Below are positions 5,693 to 50,388 of a stretch of 64,000 nucleotides of DNA, piece by piece. Origin of the DNA: Chlorokybus atmophyticus (Eukaryota; Plantae; Mesostigma and Chlorokybus algae); NCBI GenBank assembly GCA_009103225.1, contig RHPI01003389.1:186001-250000 (forward strand). Reading direction: 5' to 3'. The notes under the pieces are model-generated. The model saw only the letters and a list, made by a program, of their open reading frames with translations. It had not been told where the DNA came from and did not search any database. Each line of letters opens with the position of its first letter. The first letter of the stretch is position 1. Made by a program: the position numbers and the translations under genes.

Positions 5693-7870
5693 ATGGATTG
5701 GGTGGCAGTGGCAATTCTGCTGGTAGCGCTGCTCTGTTTGGGCACCTGGCCAGCGTGCTTTGCTTGCAACGAGCGCCGTGGGCGTGTCCCCGCCCACACT
5801 TACATCGACTATGCTTGCGCCTTTGTCGTTACTGCCGTTGTCTGCGCTCTCGCACTGGGCAATAAGGAGTTCATCTCACAGGTAAGCAGCACAGGCACTC
5901 TTTTACTCGCATGCCGCTGTACGCAGTGGTCTGTTGCTGAAAGTACAGGCATGTTGTGTGGTTGTTCATCCAGCGCACATGCACAGACTCATGCGTGTGG
6001 GTGCGCGACACAGACAACTCGCGCACACGCACGCGCGCACTCACTCGCGCGCGCATACCTTGTGTGCACACAATACTGCAGTCAGTTCACAGCCCGACAG
6101 TGCTGTGGGCTCACTGCAATGTTGACTCACCGCTACGCTGTAACATGCGACAGTTTGATGGAGCGGAGAGTCATTTGCATTTTCTCACTAGTATAGTGAT
6201 GTGCTTCTGCTAAAGTGCATGGTTGACAGTTGTCTGAGAAGAATGGCGCCGCGGCATTGTGGGCAGCGTGCGGCGGCGTGCTGCTAATGTTGGGCAACAT
6301 GAGCCTGCAGTACGGCGTTGCTCTTGTCGGCCTCGCAGTGTGCCTGCCCGTGCAAGCATCCCTTACTGTCATCATCGGTAGGTGCTTACCTGGTCGCACG
6401 CACGCAAGCATGCACACACAGACATGCGCATGCGTGCAGACATACATACAGAGGTGCGCACTTGCGTGGGCGCGCGTGCGTGCATGCGCACACACACTTC
6501 TGTGAACACATGCATGCTGCATTAAGCTAGATAGCGTGCTTCAAGTGACAGTCCACATGTGTGTTCTCTCTCTCAGGCACCACTTGCAACTACTTGCTCG
6601 ATGGCGGGCTCAACACACCCATTCCACTCTTCAGCGGTGTTGTCTGTTTTATTGCCGCCATTGCACTTGGCTGTCTGGCCCATCTTGCAGCAGCAAACAA
6701 GCGGCACGAGGAGCCTACTGTGAGACACGATAGAAACAACCACAGAAGTCCTGCCAATGACCAATGCGATGACAGGTTTGTAAATTGGTTCAGGTCTCTG
6801 CTTGCTTCAATTGACCTAAGATAAGAACTGGCAACTTATCCTCTCACTCAATGCCGTCATCATAGCCCAAGCATGAAGCGGGAAGTGTCATTGCCGCTGC
6901 TTTTTGCATTGGAGCTGCGTACACATGGCGAAGAGCAGAAGACAGAGTTCGAGCAGGCAATGGAGCTGCCATGTGCCATAGAGTTGCCTGCTCGCTCGCA
7001 ACCCTTGCAGATTGACTCTCAACACCAGTCAGTGCTTGAAGGTGCCACATCGCTGGTCCTTTGCCAACTCATGAGATGGCTGGCTGTGGTTGCTGATACC
7101 AGTCACAGGTGGCATCAATGCATTGCCAGGCAGGTCGCCAATGTTCGGGCTTGCCGTTGCGGCTGTGGGAGGCCTGTGCTTTGGCTTCTTCTCTCCGGCC
7201 TTCAACCTAGCCACCAACGATCAGCTTAACTTGCTCCCTGACGGTGTCGCCCCGCTGGTATGTTGATGCAACCAGTGTTTCAATTGCCATGCATATGAGT
7301 GGAGCTCAACCATGTATGCGCATGAACACGCACCTGTACGCACATGCGCGTGCACGTGTCTCTCAAGTGCAGACGGTGTACACAGCATACTTCTACTTCT
7401 CGCTGGCCTTCTGGGGAGTTGCGCTAGCCGTAAATGTATGCCAGCTGTACAGGCCACCTTTTAGTGGTGCGAAGAGCAGCGTCATGGCGTTCATGCACGA
7501 CCACGAAGGCCGGCCGATGGCTATCCTGGCAGGTTTCATCTCCGGCCTGGGCAACGGGCTACAGTTTGTCGGCGGCCAGGCCGCAGGCTACGCTGCAGGT
7601 ACGAGACTTGGCCCAACAGTATTGTTGTGTTCCCGCCTCTCACCTGCTTTGGTGCAATCTTATCATGTGGGGTTATGGCGTGTTTGTTGCTTGGCAGCGG
7701 ACCTCGTGCAGGCGTATCCGCTGGTGTCCACTCTGTGGGGGATACTATGCTTCGGGGAGTTTCGCCGAGCCCCACGACGAGCCAACATGCTGCTGGCCTC
7801 TATGTACATTGCGTACGGCATTGCTGTTGTTCTGCTTGCCATCTCCGCTAGGCCCAGGCCGTCAGATTGA
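5693..7870 (+). CDS. UPS: Ureide permease (UPS family nucleobase/allantoin transporter), multi-exon
   Basis: LLCLGTWPA..ERRGRVPAHTYIDY; GGVLLMLGNMSLQY; TTCNYLLDGGLN; GLGNGLQFVGGQAAGYAAADLVQAYPLVSTLWGILCFGEFRR are plant UPS motifs. Confidence 0.88.
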
Positions 7871-18743: not shown

Positions 18744-21700
18744 TCAGCTTGTCACTGTGCTCCACTGGGGTGGGATGTGTGTGGGCCGTCGATGCACAAC
18801 AGAGAACCCCGCATGACCATGTCCGTGACCATGCACCTGACCGTGACTGTGACCGTGGCCCTTGAGCGCACCAACCCGGGAAGCAAAGTTGGCCGCCGAG
18901 ATGGAGACCACGGGGCTCTTGCCGTCGCGTGGCGGGGAGAAGATCAGAGGCAGGTACTCATCCGTGTCGCACGCAAAACGTGAGTTCTTAAAGTGGTCTT
19001 CCAGAACCTCACGCCCCTGCACGCATGCATGTGTGTCATGCAAAAAATGTGCGTGGTACATGCACGTGCGCGGGTGTGTGCAGGTGTGTGTGTATGTGCG
19101 GGCCGCACGTATATCTGTGTGTGCGTGTCCGTGTGCCTGTGCTTAGAGACTTGGTACACGAGACCCACACCTGCAGGCGTGCATAGGTGATCTCGCAAAT
19201 CTTCCGGCTGTTGAACGCCTCCCAGGGCTGGCGATGGAAGGCTGTGTAGAAGCGCAAGGTTCCTTGAGAAGTAGTGAAATTTACAAACGCGTAACCGAGG
19301 TTGCAGCGGTTCCTATGGGAGCAGCATTCACGTGTGAGCAAAAAGGACAGGGAATGCACAAGCTCACAGAAGGTAGATGGAGAGTTGTCTGCAGCACGTA
19401 CTTGAAGTCAATTGGTAGGTACACAAAATCGTATGCAGAAGCTGCTTCGTCTTTCTGCAAGCCCGCATTGCACGTGCGGCAATGTTCGTCGAGCAGGGCC
19501 AGAAGCATCCCCTGACTGGCAAAGCACCATCTTTGTTCTCAAGCAAGCAGCAGCTACACACCGCAACTGGAGCACACGCTCTACATGATGCAAGTGTGAA
19601 TTGTGCTCTGATTCTAACAGATGTGTCATGTGCACGCAGAACAACTGACCCCACCTGTACTTGTTGGGTATGTTTTTTATCATTACAGTGGTACGTTCAT
19701 CCTCGCTCGAAGCGGAACAGCTGTCAGTAACAGTGGAAGCAGAAGCCGTGGGTGCCGAGAACTCGTACTGCTGAGGGCCGCCACTTTTCCTGGAGCGCTC
19801 TTTGTCACCGCAGGAGGAGGGAGCTTTGCTGTCATCAGAGGATGGTTTCACAAGCGCCGTATCCGCAGGCTCGCGGCGCAGCCTGCGCTGGGTATCTTTC
19901 CCTTGCAGACTGTGTGCAAAGTCCCTGTTGAGATATACATTACACACAGTAGCTTACACGCATGTGCGGTATGAACAGTCGTATTGCACACCTGTTCATG
20001 TGCGGCCCGCCCACGTAAGTTTCGCCCCGTGAACCATCTGAAGACAGGGCAGGATGCTGAGGACCTTGGTTTGGAGACAGCGGACCTGCAGAAGGGGAGA
20101 GTGAGTGCTAGCCCCCACTCAACATGTGTATACACATACACGGCGTGGGTTGTTATCATTTACCAACCTGGCATAGGCATAGGCATAGGCATGGGTGAGA
20201 TGGGTCCCGGGAAAGTGCCATAAGCCACAGGCCAACCGTACGGCATGGGGCGCATGTGTGGCTGCTGCTCTCGGGCGGACATGGCATGATTCATGTAGGC
20301 TGCGCCTTCCGGCATGTTGTTGGGAGGGTAACCGAGCGGGCCAGAGACCGATCTACGGGCGCCGCCTGGCCGGCTGTACTCAATCTTCAGCTTCTTGCCC
20401 CCAAGCTGGTTTGCATAAGAACATGTGCGATGTAAGTCAATGATGAGAGCGAGGTGAAGTGTAGGAAAGGCACCGCAAGCGCTCACCTGCTGGCCGTCCA
20501 TGGCCTGAAGAGCCTTGGCAGCATCGCGGACATCGTAGAACTCTACAAACCTATGCTGGTACTTTGCAGGCGTGAAGCGCACTTCCTTCACATCACCTGT
20601 GCGTGCGAATGTGGGTTATGTGTATCTCTATGAACAGTAATTACAATGCACCCGCATAAAACACCATGCTTCTGGCACTCTGCACACAAGCGTACCGTGC
20701 AAGGCAAAGGCAGCGTGCAACTCGGCGTTGCCGACAGCAGCATCAAGGTTGAAGATGACAAGAGTGCCTTGGTTGTGCCAATCGGAGGGAAAGCCACCAG
20801 CACCACCATCAGACGGGCTCGCGGCCTGATGATCGGACCTCTCTGCCGAATCCAGCGGGCCCAACACGACAGTGTAGTGCACTTCAAGCTGCTGCCACTC
20901 GGCCTCCAGCCTGGTTCGCAGCCCCTTCATGGCTTCCTGCGCGTGGCGCAAGTCATGGAAGTGTACCACCGCCACGCCACCCTGTGCCAGCTGGTCCGTC
21001 TGAAGCGCCCTGATGGAGCCGAAATCGTCAACAACCTTGCGCAAGTCCTCCGGACTGGTCGTGGCAGGTACACCCAGCAGCAGAAGGGACCTCGACGTGT
21101 GCACTCTTGGTGAGTGCGCATTCGCACTTGGTGAAGGCGGCATCGCTCCTGGCGCCTGCCCTTCCCACGGCAGCAATGGAGGTGCCATCTGAGTACAATA
21201 CAACAAGCATAAACATTAACCACCAATGAGGCGAGCAGCACCTGGTTCTCAGTTCCAACAGTCTGACAGACCGCACATGAAACTTCAAACAAGACCAAGC
21301 GCTGATGAACGTGTATACAACGACATGTGTTGTTGCTCACAAACCTGCATGTCCCAGTGCGGTGGCAGCTGGTAGGGAAAGGAGTACATTGGTGACGGCG
21401 GCAAGGGGCCGTTGGGTGATAGCGGCACAAAGTGGTAAGCGGGTGGCAGCGGTGACGGCATCGCTCCCGGCGTAAATGGTGTGGCATTCGGGTCCAGAAC
21501 TAGACCGTCATCCAACCGCAAAGCCTGGAGCGTGCAGCAACTTCCGTCAGCTCAATGCAACAAGCTTGCATACAGCAGCCACACGCAACTGACCGTCAGG
21601 TTTGGTGGCATGAACATGTGTGGCGGCATGTCCACTCGGGGTGGATGCATCCATGGACTCGGGTACATTGCAGGTTCAAGGCTTGGTAGCATTATGCCAC

Positions 21701-42739: not shown

Positions 42740-44178
42740 GGCCATTTTTGCATGTTTTCGCCGCCACGCTTTCAATGTCTGCTGCCTATATGCAGGTCCC
42801 AGGGCAAATACCATGTCCATACTGCAGCCCTCTATTGCAGCAGCTATTGAAGCAGCTATTACTCTCTAAGCCCTGTGTGAGCCCAAGACGCATTTCGCTT
42901 GCTATGTATTACTACTACTACTTATGCATAAACTTCGTAGTATGCGCAGACTCTTGGGTTTGGTCAGCGATAGACCCATCACGTACGATGTAATTGTCTA
43001 TTGTTTGTTTACAGCGACAGCGGTTGAACACAATCAGGCTGTGGACTTTGTGCTTGCCAGTACTGAGCGCATTGCGTATGCGCTCATTTGTTTGTGGCAA
43101 TCTTGAAGAAGTATGTGTACCTAGCATGGTATAGCTGTTTAGAAGATATGCGATGCTGTGATTGTGTCTGCCATATTCGCTTGGCTCTAACAACAGATGT
43201 TAGGATGACAGTTCCTGATCTGGCAGTGGTTGTAGAGCACGAAGTGGTTTACAACCACAATTCCAGTTGAGCCTGGTCCATGATGTATTGTCTTCAGTCC
43301 CTGCACTTGTAGTCTCCCGTCATCACGCATACAATTACCACAACAAACATATGCAGTTGCATCACTTTTCAGCTTGCTTGCCACTTGAGCACGGCGAGGA
43401 TGGCGACTGCACAGAGACAACTTGACGCTACTGGCGACAGGTATGGTGGCAGCACTGACAACGGACGCTTGCACGTCCATATTGAGGAATATAGTTGGTG
43501 GCAGCCTTGATTGTACATCAGGAGTTATGCAAAAGTTTTTCTCAAGTCAACTTGTTCACAATCTATTATTCTCGTATACCCCACAGCGCATGTAAGTATT
43601 AGCTATGCTGCTGCATGGGGTGGTTGGTTACGACAACTGGCTAACAATCTTGGCACACAATGAACCGCTGAACTGTTGTCAACGTGCTAGTAGCAGACAC
43701 TCAATCTTAGTGTATGTATGCAAGCGCATGTGACTTGGGGGTAACGTAAAGGCGCTGAGTACTGGATTATGGTATGATGTTCTGCTTACAATCCGAAATA
43801 AGTGGATGCACAGTGCATGGCGGTTACAATGTTGCAACATTGAGAAATTGAGGTGTCAAACACTCTGCAACGCAGCCGTAGTGTTGACATGTTGTGGTGA
43901 CACAGCAACCTTACACAGCTTGAACACACACGCTGCTGGTTGGAATGAGTCTAACAGGCACTATTCATGTACCATAAGTTTGTACCAACCATCATCACTT
44001 GCAAACAACTTTTTCCTCACAAGCTTCACATAGTAATTCAAAAAAGTGTACACCAGTTTCTGTCAGCTATGCACAACTGTACACAAAATTGGGGGCTAAC
44101 ATATCGCATCAATTCTATGACCGAATAGAAGATTTGACCGCATCAACAGCTCCACTAGCTGCATCAACTCCTCCCAAC

Positions 44179-47080
44179 TTACTGGGGTCCTGCAAAAGGG
44201 CAACACCATTTCAGACACCAGCATCATGATGAATGCGACAGCAATTTTGCACACAACATCATTGTCTCTTCCAGCTGAAAATGCTTCAGACCTGACCTTG
44301 TGAGGTGAGATCACGGGCAGAGCGGTTGATCTGGTCGAAGACATTGCCAGCCTGGCCAAGAGTGTTCTTGATGGTGTCCTGCATATGAAACAGCGTTAAT
44401 CACTGACGACATATTACAGCATAACTGCAATGCAACAGAACAATCTGGAAAACAAGTCACTTACCCCTCCGGAGCGGGCGAAACGGTCAGCATTCTCAAG
44501 GGGATTGGCGCTGCCAACAGTGTCCTCAGCCTGCTTCTGGGCGTTGCCGAGGGCGCCGCGGACTCTCTCACCAAGGTCACCGCCGGTGCTGCTGCTCTGC
44601 TTGTCAAACTTGCCCTGAGCCTCACCGAAGCGGTTGTTGACCCTGCCTGCAGCCTTCTCAGCCTGACCCTTGGTGAAGTCATCAGCGCCGGAGGTCTGGC
44701 CCTGGCCGAAGTCGAAGCTGCGGTTGTCGAGGTCACGGCCAACATTGGGGAGCTGCTTCTCAATGTTGGAGGCCTGGCTCTGACCCTGGTTGAAGAGACC
44801 CTTAGCCTTGTTGGCAACATCACCAGCGTCGGGAGCCTGGGACTGAGCCTGACCGAAGAAGCCCTTGACCTTGTTGGCGACATCACCAGCGTCGGGGAGC
44901 TGGTTCTGGGCCTGGCCAACGAGGCCCTTGGCCTTGTTAGCCACATCATCAGCGTTGGGGGCCTGGGCTTGAGCCTGGCCAAAGAGACCCTTGGCCTTGC
45001 CGGCAACCTCATTGGCATCGGGAATCTGATTCTGAACCTGGCCGAAGATGTTCTTGGCCTGGTTCTTCACATCTCCAGCGTTGGGAGCCTGAGCCTGGGC
45101 CTGGCCAAAGATGTTCTTGGCCTGGTTGGCAACATCGCCGGCATCCGGGACCTGGTTCTGGACCTGGCCGAAAATGTTTCTGGCCTTGTTCTGCACCTCT
45201 CCCGCGCTGGGAACCTGGGCCTGGGCCTGGCCAAAGATGTTCTTGGCCTGGTTGCCAACGTCGCTGGCATCAGGAACATTGTTCTGGACCTGGCCGAAGA
45301 TGTTCTTGGCCTGGTTCTTCACGTCTCCAGCAGTGGGAACCTGAGCCTGAGCCTGGCCGAAAATGTTCTTGGCCTTGTTACCAAGGTCGCTGGCGTCGGG
45401 GACCTGGTTTTGAGCCTGGCCGAAGATGTTCTTAGCCTTGTTGCCGATGTCGCTGGCGTCAGGAACCTGAGCCTGAGCCTGCCCGAAGATGTTCTTGGCC
45501 TTGTTGCCAAGGTCGCTAGCGTCAGGGACCTGGTTCTGAGCTTGGCCGAAGAGACCCTTGGCCTTGTTGGCAACATCACCAGCGTCGGGGAGCTGAGCCT
45601 GAGCCTGGCCGAAGATGTTCTTGGCCTGGTTGGCGACATCACTGCCACTGGGGACCTGGGCCTGAGCCTGGCCGAAGATATCGTTCGTGCCACCCACATT
45701 GCTTGGTGGGGCCTGGTTGATGGGAATGCCAAGGATGTTCTTGGTCATGGAAAACCTATTGTTGTTGCTGTTGGGCATCTGGCTCTGAGCAAGGAGAGAG
45801 TCCTCCTTGGCAGCGGAGCGGCTCTGGCCCTGACCGAAGATGCCCTTGGCCTTGCCTGCGACATCATTGGCGTTGGGAAGCTGGTTCTTGGCCTGTCCGA
45901 AGGCGTTCTTGGCCTTGCCTGCGACATCATTGGCATCGGGGAGCTGGCTCGTGGCCTGGCCAAAGGCGTTCTTGGCCTTGTTTGCAAGGTTGTCGGCATT
46001 GGGGAGCTGGTTCTGGGCCTGGCCGAGAATGTTCTTGGCGTTGCCGGCTATCTGGTTGGCATCAGGGACATTGCTCTGAGCTTGGCCGAAGATGTTCTTG
46101 GCCTTGTTGGCGATGTCATTGCCGTCAGGGAGGTTGCTCTGAGCCTGGCCGAAAGCGTTCTTGGCCTTGTTCGCCAGGTTGTCGGTGCTGGGGAGCTGAT
46201 TCTGTGCCTGGCCGAAGGCGTTCCTTGCCTGGTTGCCAATGCTGTTGACGTCAGGAGCCTGCGCCTGGACCTTTCCAAAGAGACCCTCCGCCTGACCCTG
46301 AGCCTTGCCAAACAGACCCTCAGCCTGGCCCTGGGTCTTGCCGAATAGCCCCTGAGCCTTGCCAGAGACTTCATCAGCAGCTCCCTGAGCAGTACCCTGG
46401 GCGTTGCTGAAGAAACCCTCCGCCTGACCCTTGAGCTTATCTGCCTGGCCCTGCGCCGCCCTGGCCGCCGCCCTAGCCTCAATGCCCGCACGACCAGCTT
46501 CACCGAAAGCCAATGCAGGGTTAGCCTGTAACAACCACAAAGCGTGTCGGCGTCTGTTATGCACCATATACACTCAATGCAGCTGCTGCAGGCAAAGATA
46601 TGCAACGATGAAAAACCCTAACCAGCAAGCGACATGCTCTTACCGGTGCAGCGATCAGCGGCATTGTAGCCAGCAGAGCGGTGAGGCCCAGGGTGGCGGC
46701 CTTCTTGCCAGCGCCATTGCTCTTGCGCTCATCAGCCTCGGCACGCACTACCAGGGAGCGCTGCAGACACAACAACTGTCAACATTGTTCAAACTGAGCA
46801 TATCCTCCGCTAACCAATAGTGACGTCACTAGCACATGCAAAGCTGCGTGACACGTCGGCTGCATTCACCAGTGCATTCACCACTACAAACACAGCAACC
46901 ATCGAGCAGGCATGCTGAACCAAACTGGGGGGGCAGGATATGTGAAGCACAGTAGCATGCATGCATGTTTGGGGCGCTAACCTGCACGGGCTGTGGGCGC
47001 TGGGAGGTGTGCTTTGCCTTGGAGACTCCGAGTTGCTCTCCGGAGACGGCCTTCAGCTGAGCGGCGATTGCTTGAGCCAT
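44179..47080 (-). CDS. Large LEA/apolipoprotein-like tandem-repeat protein with a bipartite chloroplast/thylakoid-lumen targeting signal
   Basis: Exons splice in phase 0: MAQAIAAQLK..PVQ|RSLVVRA-EADERKSNGAGKKAATLGLTALLATMPLIAAP|ANPALA-FGE. About 5-6 11-mers are followed by 21 copies of a 21-aa unit like FGQAQAQVPDAGDVANKAKNI. Two short 3' exons end ..GPQ*. Confidence 0.85.
46818..46860. promoter_or_regulatory. bZIP palindrome and overlapping DRE/ABRE-like element in intron 1 of the repeat-protein gene
   Basis: TAGTGACGTCACTA (46818-46831); GCCGACGTGTC on the minus strand (46850-46860). Motif match only. Confidence 0.35.
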
Positions 47081-48039
47081 GGTTGCGTTTCCAAACTAGC
47101 GACTGTAAGCTTTCTTACACGGTTCTATACACACACAAGCGCTCAACAAGATTCAACGCACAACGAACTGTACACAAGCTTCTCTTTGAAGTGCAGCGTG
47201 GCCAGAATGGGGGCCACGGCAGAGTTTATATCGAGTGCGTTGTGTTTCGAGAAACTCTTTCTGTCATCTGCGCGCGTGGCAGCCGGTTGCATGCGAGAGA
47301 TCCTCCGTTAGAGCTCGGAACGATTATCATTGACGTTTTGGAAAATCACCGCTGTCTGGTGCGAAACCTTAGGGGCAATGCTACTGATATCTGAGATCTA
47401 TGGATATCGTTATCCTACGCTGAGCGCCAGCATCTCGATCTCTCACGGATCTCTTCGGACTGTCCGAGTCAGACGGGCAGGTCTGACATCAGCGCGATTA
47501 TGATCTCTTGTGTGGTATTTTCCCCTTTCGTCTCAGTGGGCTGACATTCGTACATGAGCTTGCAGTTTATAATGCAACGGATGAACTCAATGCCGGCCGT
47601 TGCGCATGTGACGTGGCGGTCCGTGTCGTCGTCAGTGTTGAGTCGTCACCATTGGAGCTGCGCGTCACGGTCCGTGCCTCTGGGCGTCACGCGCATAGTG
47701 TGAATGCTAGATGGCATTAAAGAAGTGCAATGCTCAACCGTGCTCACAGCCATGAGCAAAAGCATGCATACAACGCCATGTTGATCTATCAGCGTTTATC
47801 AATCAAGCACGCACGCACGCAAGCCGCTAAGTACTGGCCCTAAGTACAAGCGCAAAGCCTTTGCTAGCTCACACCAACAGGGTGGTGTACACGCGTGCAC
47901 AGCGCACGCGCTCTCACCATGCATAATGGCAGCGTTACCGGCGCTGTTGTTGAATACTAAAGCATGTGTGTATATCTTGCTTGTAGTATGGTCGACCTCC
48001 TCGCTTCAATAGCATATGAACATTGTCACATCAAGTTCT

Positions 48040-49700
48040 TAAGCGACTTAACATAATTTTGGAATTGTGGAATACTTTACATTTGCGCACATTTCACAAC
48101 AGTCGCAGCTGCCCCTCATTGCATTGCATTGCATGCAGCCGTGTATAGCTGTTTTGCTTTATTATATAATAAAATATCATAAAAATAAATATCATAAAAC
48201 GTTTTTAAACAAGGTTACCATACAAGGTTACGCAAAATTTACAAGTAGTGTTAAGTAAAGTAAGGTAAACCGCAAGTTCACGAAACTAATTGAAGAGTCT
48301 GCGTCGCCGAAGATACAGTGACCATGCCATTAGCTCAATTTGAAATATTTTAGTTTCTTACACGTGCATATTAATCAATTAACACATCACATTTAATATG
48401 TAATCTGTTTGTGAATATGATGCATGTTGTGTGGGTATGTTTGTGGAACAGAAGTTCTTACCTTCCATATACAAACCTTTAAGAAATTGAGATTTGTGTA
48501 CATATTTTTCGATATACATACGTATTTGTAACATTACTATTGTTGAAACTACAATTGCGATGCCCATGTAATAGTCATGACAGTAAGCATGTTTTGTTGA
48601 TATAGCCCGCCATCTAATGCAGTTGATGACTTGTACTACATATTATTGTTATTTGCAACATTTGCCACAAATATCATAAACAAAATGTTACACTAATAAC
48701 CAATTGACGAGTACTACTGTTATCAGTTTAAGCAACATTAGAACCATGAATGTATTCAAATTTATTTAAAAAGAGTTAATATTGGATTAGCATGTTGTTT
48801 TTTAAACATAAACAATTAAAAATCGTATTGTTTATTTTTTAGCCGTTATGTTAATGTTTTGTTATACAGGTCATTGACATTGTACAAGCATGGATCTAAA
48901 CTTCAAATATGAAGCGTTGCCTAAGGCCTTTGCAGGCCTTATTGGACACATTATGTGTGTCATCTCGGTCTCCCCTATCATCCATGTATATTGATGCCCA
49001 TCTCGGATTGCGTTGTTTCTAGAAGTTTTGCACTTGATTACGCCACCGTGGTTGAACCATTGTTGTAACATCTCAAGCTTGTACACAAACGCAAATAGTG
49101 CCTAATATGGAGACAATGTCTTTTAACAAGATGATGGCTGCCATACCACTTGTTAAGACTGGTGCAAAAAGTGATACCGGACCATTAATGGGTTTGCAAG
49201 TTTAAAGTATATAGCATTTGCTATATATACTCGTCCAAAATCTTGCCAAAAGAAATATCGGTATACAGAATAATACCGGAAAACTATTGCACTTAATTAA
49301 TTCATACTGCAGCACCTCCATGGTTTTTTTTTGAAGTCATACAACGACGGCAACACATCATGCCCAGTGAGCGATTATAAAGTATCCATGATACCCTGTA
49401 TTTAACATATCATGCTATAACTTATCATGCCAGTAACTTTCTAGCCAATAGTTGATGCTTATGCAATAATGCAAGCGCCCTTGCTTTATTATTGGTATGT
49501 GTTAACAACAAACACATATTGTCACGCCTGCAAGGCAAGGCTTTACTCGTTTTAATAATATCGCTTGCTATAGCATAGCTTGCCAATAGGATTGCAAATA
49601 TCTCTCCCATGCAGGTGTTTGTACAATGCATGAGGGGTGGTTTGCAATCGGTTGCAAGATCTACCTCTGAGCCCAAGGGCCTTAGGCAAGGAATTTTTCA
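48040..49700. other. AT-rich island without an intact ORF
   Basis: Visibly AT-rich compared with its flanks; only short broken ORFs. Confidence 0.7.
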
Positions 49701-50388
49701 AGAATTGAGATGAGCCAGCACAGGGCCAATCAGTACGCAGTCATATGATGTGATGTGACATGCTATGTTGCTTCATATGAGGACAGCCCCGCGTAAATAT
49801 CACTCGCGTAAGGTGCTATGCTGTGACAAGCAGGCACAAAGCAATTAAGTAATGTGCTTGCTTGGTAGTGCTACAGCCTAAGGTGGCACCTGACTGAGGT
49901 CAACACATGTGGCGCTGAGAGCACTTAGCAAGCTGGCTGATAAGGTGCTACTCGGCCAATGCGTGGCCAAGTGGGAAGGCAGCCGATGGAATACATAAGG
50001 AGGTTGCTGGCAGTGTGTAGACAATCACAAGTGTTAGGCTCCTTGTGCTCACTACGGTGTAAGGGGTGCTTGGCGGTAGTTGTTCAAGGGGCCTTCCCCT
50101 GCTCTATGTTAAGTAGGCTGTGTCGCGGTGCTGTGTTGGGGGCGGTGTGCGAAGGACGACTCAAGTCTAGGCTTCTTAAAGGGTGTGTCTTTACGAGCCT
50201 GCTCAAATGAGAAGGGCTTTAAACTTTCCCTCACTCAGATGGTTAAACTTGAAGACTGATCAGTGCTGTCTTGCATACAAGCATTACGAGCTGCAGTACT
50301 GCAGCACATGCAACCATGCCGGAAGGATCATATTACAACCTGGAAGTACAGCAAGACCGTCTTGCTATACTTCCCAAAGGGCCTGCGT

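Follow-up and report, generated by a model that had tools for sequence, protein, structure and literature searches.

We analyzed a 64,000-nucleotide stretch of the genome of Chlorokybus atmophyticus (GenBank assembly GCA_009103225.1, contig RHPI01003389.1, positions 186,001 to 250,000, hereafter the window, in whose own numbering all positions are given), and found one five-exon gene at 47080..44179, encoding a repeat protein of about 789 amino acids (aa). A first-pass annotation of this DNA had proposed here a thylakoid-lumen-targeted protein built from 21 proline-punctuated amphipathic units of 21 residues, likely to protect membranes during desiccation or stress. The strand had to be corrected, as the gene lies on the minus strand, and all gene features below are given for that strand.

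Gene structure and expression

The gene model was built by reading the sequence and by exon-by-exon translation, and it was compared with transcript contigs. Exon 1 (46982..47080, 33 codons) carries the ATG and the first part of a transit-peptide-like region. Exon 2 (46644..46760, 39 codons) encodes V-V-R-A, a candidate stromal cleavage site, then an n-region running to a Lys-Lys pair and a hydrophobic h-region of 19 residues that was delimited by hydropathy. Exon 3 (44465..46525, 687 codons) starts with the c-region A-N-P-A-L-A (46508..46525), which on inspection is a candidate site for the thylakoid processing peptidase, placed before F-G-E. Exon 4 (44297..44378) adds 27 codons and one base, and exon 5 (44179..44189) provides the final two codons and the TAA stop (44181-44179). 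All four introns have GT..AG borders.

The locus was present in four public sequencing runs from two studies, whose contigs were compared over 44000-47300. One run dates from 2013 and belongs to a study of several organisms, and others are isolates of a 2021 study, a pattern that fits the 1KP run and an RNA-seq study of cryptic Chlorokybus species (PMC8611356). The contigs of two of them, X1 and X2, omitted exactly 46761-46981, 46526-46643, 44379-44464, and 44190-44296, pieces with CT..AC ends on the plus strand, i.e., GT..AG on the minus strand. Since they lack the introns, these contigs must derive from RNA, the type of run being otherwise guessed. They carry the joint 46982/46760 and the other exon joints, so the joining of exons 1 to 3, on which the lumen proposal depended, held. 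In addition, they ran unbroken across the whole repeat region, including the spacer that separates its two blocks, where no joint was found. The untranslated regions (UTRs) are at least 47081..47274 on the 5′ side, the X2 contig extending to 47274 and that of X1 to 47174, and at least 44023..44178 on the 3′ side, where the X1 contig reached 44023. Within the 5′ UTR there is an upstream open reading frame (ORF) of 13 codons at 47226-47267 on the minus strand, with its ATG at 47267 and TAA at 47228-47226; this is inside the X2 contig and past the end of the X1 contig, and it may therefore occur in longer transcripts only.

A further run, X4, contained a copy that was 95-99% identical and came from a sibling lineage, with the exon 2/3 junction kept (46524/46643). 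It differed from the window by six synonymous changes and six conservative replacements, which are few sites and whose mapping inside the repeats is uncertain. The last codons of the X4 transcript, G-P-Q-stop, were also kept, and the sequences diverged directly after the stop, the contig continuing from 44296 through 17 other letters to 44174; this difference is a 3′ UTR divergence between cryptic lineages. The transcript was not rare in ordinary cultures, with contig word depths, a poor measure of abundance, from hundreds to thousands in ordinary culture transcriptomes, indicating that expression of the gene is not restricted to stress.

A plus-strand ORF of 459 aa at 44969-46348, rich in Leu, Gly, and Val, was rejected as a mirror artefact of the periodic coding, because only the minus strand agrees with the splice sites and the contigs. 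Elsewhere in the window, an exon-sized ORF at 7244-7870 on the plus strand gave a strong Pfam match to Ureide_permease (E 2e-42), revealing a plant-type ureide permease gene, and a minus-strand ORF at 20631-21206 gave a weak match to RRM_1 (E 1e-4) and is possibly part of a gene for an RNA-binding protein. The G+C content was 0.38 at 48001-50000, just upstream of the repeat protein gene, versus 0.50-0.56 elsewhere.

Repeat anatomy and predicted helices

Exon 3 encodes 87% of the protein, and its product was used as the query for sequence searches and folds. Five to six 11-mers of the type E/Q-G-L-F-G-K-x-Q-G-Q-A come first (46271..46453, exon-3 residues 25-85), and these are predicted to form a single long helix. 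They are followed by block A, with seven units of 21 aa (45830..46270, residues 86-232), a spacer of about 63 aa (45641..45829), block B, with 14 units of 21 aa and a super-period of 42 aa (44759..45640, residues 296-589), and the non-repeat C-terminal region contributed by exon 3, of about 98 aa and with three predicted helices (44465..44758). When read in the protein register, the previously proposed count of seven units, spacer, and 14 units, preceded by five to six 11-mers, was thus correct. In the same region, Tandem Repeats Finder reported two arrays of 63-bp units, one of 14 copies with a super-period of 126 bp at 44801-45679 and one of 6.1 copies at 45845-46230, and a third array with 3.2 copies of a 33-bp unit at 46256-46359. 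Moreover, a degenerate DNA pattern for F-G-Q-A-Q-x-Q gave 17 matches where 0.07 were expected, and all 17 were inside the gene.

The consensus of the unit is D-V-A-N-K-A-K-N-I-F-G-Q-A-Q-A-Q-V-P-D-A-G. The period is 21 aa, or 63 bp, and not the 22 residues of the apolipoprotein repeats that had been invoked for comparison. The proposed rule of one Pro per unit held for 19 of the 21 units and failed for the final unit of each block, which has no Pro. The spacer, assigned from the register, the contigs, and AlphaFold, is exonic and predicted to be disordered; it retains remnants of two to three decayed units, such as K-N-I-L-G-I-P-I-N-Q-A-P-P-S-N, indicating that it consists of decayed copies rather than foreign sequence. 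Pairwise comparison of the 63-nt units gave proportions of synonymous (pS) and nonsynonymous (pN) differences of 0.53 and 0.18 in block B (pN/pS 0.35), and of 0.52 and 0.22 in block A (pN/pS 0.43). Half of the synonymous sites have changed while the peptide has been retained, which makes the copies ancient and subject to purifying selection, and not a product of fresh slippage.

The hydrophobic moment, averaged over the first 17 residues of each unit, peaked at 100 degrees with a value of 0.41, compared with 0.21 ± 0.024 in shuffled units, i.e., about 8 standard deviations above them, and the highest of 1000 shuffles reached 0.29. On the helical wheel of the consensus, the sector of 80-180 degrees is occupied by V2, A6, I9, F10, A13, and V17, with K5 at 40 degrees and K7 at 240 degrees bordering this hydrophobic face, and the remainder is Gln, Asn, and Asp; the charge of each unit is given by two Lys and two Asp. 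A Lys at the interface between polar and non-polar faces is the class-A pattern of lipid-binding helices that lie on a surface, and the wheel angles, together with a Pro in 19 of 21 units, place the consensus unit in the class of class-A amphipathic helices with Pro punctuation. AlphaFold2, run without an alignment, modeled the 11-mers as one long helix and the units as helices of 15-18 residues that break at each Pro, with the spacer disordered. In this prediction, the mean predicted local distance difference test score (pLDDT) was 53 and the predicted TM-score (pTM) was 0.21; a piece of eight units gave a pLDDT of 70.6 and a pTM of 0.20, the other four models being far worse. Local pLDDT values reached about 80. 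In these models, the predicted helix propensity is local and strong, and a fixed tertiary fold or solenoid is without support. The amphipathic-helix claim made at first reading was supported, the wheel being class-A-like.

The mature part encoded by exon 3 (681 aa after A-L-A) had a grand average of hydropathy (GRAVY) of -0.72 and an isoelectric point of 9.05. It contains no Cys, Trp, Tyr, or His, and its two Met are both in the decayed spacer. These are the residues most prone to oxidation, and their absence fits both the habit of late embryogenesis abundant (LEA) proteins and hydrophilins and a location beside photosystem II.

The presequence and a relative in Mesotaenium

In nuclear-encoded lumen proteins, a stromal transit peptide precedes a basic n-region, an h-region, and small residues at -3/-1 (A-x-A). 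Inspection and hydropathy, on which our assignment of the presequence is based, revealed a bipartite arrangement of this kind in the window protein. Up to V-V-R-A, the product of exon 1 and early exon 2 abounds in Ala, Ser, Gln, Lys, and Arg and has only one acidic residue; V-V-R-A is followed by a charged stretch up to KK, the hydrophobic core, P-A-N-P-A-L-A, and then F-G-E. The core had a Kyte-Doolittle score of 1.61 over 19 residues, and it is the sole segment of this kind, the maximum in the exon-3 product being 0.35. An endoplasmic reticulum (ER) signal peptide is placed at the extreme N-terminus, and the position of the core, about 52 residues in, argues against such a signal. The twin-arginine motif of the twin-arginine translocation (Tat) route was not found in the window presequence, which has KK instead of RR, suggesting a Sec-type route for the Chlorokybus protein.

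When the exon-3 product was used in a word-index search, the single match was P0001 (ME000480S07854 of Mesotaenium endlicherianum, 446 aa, E 1e-11), an unnamed predicted protein that forms a cluster of one member; with P0001 itself as query, the word search returned no other protein. Of 1.84 billion representatives that were searched exhaustively with phmmer, 111 matched at E <= 0.001, and upon inspection nearly all were rejected as unrelated low-complexity sequences (e.g., S-S-L-G-D-A-K 7-mers) or giant repeat proteins. Judged by sequence, P0001 is the sole credible homologue among the matches of both searches, and our literature search found no paper naming it. It shares with the window protein the unit core K-G-L-F-G-Q-A-Q-N-Q-A-S-K-A-G-D-V-A, with 33-40% identity across the repeat region, and G-L-F-G-Q is the best conserved part. 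Like the window protein, it is hydrophilic and basic, and it is devoid of Cys, Trp, His, and Met, whereas it has only about six units of irregular length (18-22 aa), with Ser or Ala at the position of the Pro. The proline punctuation is thus missing from this relative.

The relative also has an equivalent presequence, with a polar start up to K-V-R-A, then T-R-R-S, a hydrophobic core (Kyte-Doolittle score 1.30 over 19 residues), and A-Y-A. A twin-arginine motif in that position is a hallmark of lumen proteins that use the Tat route. The two-part plastid and lumen-type presequence of the original proposal was present as read, and the occurrence of a lumen-type signal before the repeat in two distant streptophyte algae is the best evidence for the compartment. 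Taken together, the sequence features suggest that the protein is probably targeted to the lumen.

Two metatranscriptome proteins of about 600 aa (P0045 and P0073, locus L001), regarded as distant kin, have 21-residue, Pro-punctuated units (M-P-S-M-D-S-V-K-G-A-A...) that are in register with those of the window protein (x-P-x-x-x-D-V-K-N-x-A...), at 24% identity. Their presequence is of a plain organelle type, without a hydrophobic core. P0073 has a faint precomputed match to the Pfam family named after At4g13230 (PF28479), a model that appeared in no Pfam scan result, even that of P0073. Hundertmark and Hincha (PMC2292704) assign At4g13230 to the LEA_4 group, with a predicted mitochondrial location. 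The two proteins may thus be plant LEA proteins of the At4g13230 type, linking the 21-mer module to LEA_4, and this hints that the module could be part of a wide LEA_4-like world in which the lumen signal would be the special addition.

Candidate function, alternatives, and known families

Our tentative interpretation, to which we grant slightly less than an even chance, is that this nuclear gene encodes a lumen-targeted, LEA-like protectant of subaerial streptophyte algae that acts mainly at the membrane surface. We infer the following route for it. The precursor of about 789 aa would be imported into the chloroplast, trimmed near V-V-R-A, and passed unfolded across the thylakoid membrane by means of KK, the 19-residue core, and A-L-A, here by a Sec-type pathway. 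The product released into the lumen, with about 710 aa and a mass of 73 kDa, would be basic, very hydrophilic, and loosely structured as long as the lumen is hydrated. Each 21-mer could then form a helix of about 17 residues with a narrow Val/Ala/Ile/Phe/Ala/Val stripe, two flanking Lys, and a polar face rich in Gln and Asn, the helices being linked by Pro-Asp-Ala-Gly hinges. Upon a fall in water activity by drying, freezing, or osmotic shrinkage, the helices would settle on the leaflet that faces the lumen and on proteins exposed there, and this coat may prevent the fusion of facing membranes and shield photosystem II on its oxygen-evolving side, much like group-3 LEA and COR15-type proteins.

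Several observations weigh against this interpretation. The targeting rests on a presequence read by eye, and the location is therefore a candidate only. The KK of the window protein and the RR of its relative suggest different translocases, and Mesotaenium lacks the proline hinge. At the level of hidden Markov models (HMMs), the protein falls outside LEA_4, apolipoprotein, and CsbD. The gene is expressed in ordinary cultures, hence induction by stress is only hypothetical. With two family members only, a connection with the subaerial habit is anecdotal, suggestive at most. Finally, the window's own protein was not recovered from the protein libraries, which therefore cover streptophyte algae incompletely, and the absence of the family elsewhere is weak evidence.

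A lumenal protein could also work away from the membrane, as a soluble molecular shield or as a cohesive gel, rich in Phe-Gly and Gln/Asn, that thickens or vitrifies the lumen on water loss. The (G/N)-(L/I)-F-G-Q motif found in every unit within a context rich in Gln, Asn, Ala, and Gly, the preference for keeping G-L-F-G-Q in Mesotaenium, the low tertiary confidence of the AlphaFold models, and a weak match to Nucleoporin_FG (PF13634; 12 bits for a window piece, E 0.41, below the cut-off of 32.2) are in agreement with this. Cohesive FG domains have uncharged spacers, whereas each unit here has two Lys and two Asp, and the below-threshold HMM score and this charge set the protein apart from FG-nucleoporins. 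Since the strict 100-degree amphipathicity with Lys at the interface is a trait of surface-binding helices, we regard the shield or gel as unlikely.

Alternatively, the protein could be a constitutive lumen component unrelated to stress, such as a long and flexible spacer or scaffold that would determine the width of the lumen or organize thylakoids, e.g., those crossing the pyrenoid. Transcript contigs were found in every culture transcriptome with the organism, at the depths given above, and about 21 helices of about 2.5 nm would make a long molecule if fully helical. No partner-binding motif or folded domain was found with Pfam, PDB, or Foldseek, and, apart from P0001, the searched libraries gave no family member from their many green algae and plants, which would be strange for a central structural element; such a role appears quite improbable. 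The same low likelihood is given to a location outside the lumen, whether as an uncleaved membrane anchor or as an ordinary organelle-targeted LEA-like protein of the stroma, the plastoglobule surface, the mitochondrion, or the secretory path. The in-register proteins P0045 and P0073 with their simple organelle-type presequence, the faint match of P0073 to a LEA_4-group family with a predicted mitochondrial member, and the assignment of the presequence by eye speak for it, and it is countered by a core about 52 residues in, with basic residues before it and Pro...A-x-A after it, which is the standard lumen signal and not the extreme N-terminal position expected of an ER signal, and by the recurrence of this layout in Mesotaenium with a textbook T-R-R-x twin-arginine motif. 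A functionless low-complexity expansion by replication slippage in an unimportant gene, which the simple composition and the prevalence of other low-complexity repeats among database matches might suggest, is largely refuted and very improbable, given the synonymous divergence among units with the peptide kept (pN/pS 0.35), splicing and expression in several isolates, including the 95-99% identical sibling lineage, and the conservation of the unit motif and the presequence layout in a zygnematophyte.

The lumen houses the most damage-prone part of photosynthesis, and its protection in drying cells represents a gap: accounts of LEA-type protection against desiccation and freezing concern the cytosol, mitochondria, stroma, and secretory path, and no LEA-like protein is known to have been described from the lumen. 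The complete lack of oxidizable side chains outside the decayed spacer would be a notable design feature for any protein meant to survive beside photosystem II, and the simple modular design and conserved lumen-type signal make this gene a clonable candidate. Literature searches that paired the thylakoid lumen with LEA proteins or disordered repeat proteins gave incidental co-mentions only, with neither term in titles or abstracts, and no relevant lumenal repeat protein was found in the pyrenoid literature. Chlorokybus is a subaerial alga of soil and rock surfaces, with cryptic species recognized in an RNA-seq study of four isolates (PMC8611356), whose reference list cites, for the genome of Mesotaenium, a work titled 'Genomes of subaerial Zygnematophyceae'; as both holders of the family are described as subaerial, both live exposed to the air. 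The two subaerial streptophytes with the family thus bracket the lineage from which land plants arose. A far-reaching claim, possible in our opinion and yet doubtful, is that the thylakoid lumen could have here its first LEA-like hydrophilin, whose 21 hinged class-A helices would form an oxidation-proof coat and protect the lumenal membrane face and the water-splitting side of photosystem II during drying; the protein would have been inherited from, or at least shared since, the deepest streptophyte split (Chlorokybus to Zygnematophyceae) as part of a pre-land-plant tool-kit for life in air.

As for known families, the first-pass annotation had pointed to LEA_4 and apolipoproteins, and Pfam placed the protein in neither of them. 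LEA_4 was not matched at E <= 1 by the exon-3 product or at E <= 10 by the N- and C-terminal pieces or the Mesotaenium relative, and Apolipoprotein (PF01442) was not matched at E <= 1 by the exon-3 product or at E <= 10 by the two end pieces. The Apolipoprotein HMM gave 16-44 bits with the relatives, among them 16.5 bits with the Mesotaenium protein, against a cut-off of 90. Other scores below threshold were those of CsbD (PF05532), with 18.1 bits for the 11-mer piece and 12.4 bits for the C-terminal piece (cut-off 40), and of YtxH, with 16.5 bits for the Mesotaenium relative (cut-off 37.5). The matches of the exon-3 product to DUF745 (43 bits), Laminin_I, and LiaF-like_C were discarded as compositional, since they fall on the Gln/Ala-rich repeats; for LiaF-like_C, no single stretch passed alone. 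No PDB chain was found by sequence at E <= 1, a Foldseek search of PDB with the eight-unit model found none at E <= 10, and a feature search of the ESM Atlas gave no usable match. The expectation that the protein matches no characterized family was hence borne out in Pfam, in PDB by sequence, and with phmmer.

Small Gly/Ala/Lys/Gln-rich helical motifs of CsbD-like and YtxH-like bacterial general-stress proteins resemble the N-terminal 11-mers and the C-terminal region of the window protein. With the exchangeable apolipoproteins (ApoA-I, ApoA-IV, and ApoE) and apolipophorin-III, it shares tandem amphipathic helices punctuated by Pro, with basic residues at the interface; however, its period is 21 and not 22 or 11, and those proteins form an animal family for lipid transport, so any likeness is convergent. 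The group 3 LEA, or LEA_4, proteins that are targeted to organelles, such as COR15A/B in the stroma and At4g13230, predicted mitochondrial, are likewise hydrophilic, free of Cys and Trp, and built from tandem amphipathic helices, these being 11-mer-based and expected to fold on drying and to lie on membranes. The high hydrophilicity, the lack of Cys and Trp, and the tandem amphipathic helical repeats of the window protein are all physical traits of LEA_4, and its GRAVY is similar to the LEA_4 range of -0.54 to -0.83 (PMC2292704). In contrast to group 3 LEA proteins, its unit has 21 aa, a Pro hinge, and an F-G-Q core, and its compartment would be the lumen; we infer that it brings a new unit and a new compartment to the LEA-like amphipathic repeat proteins.

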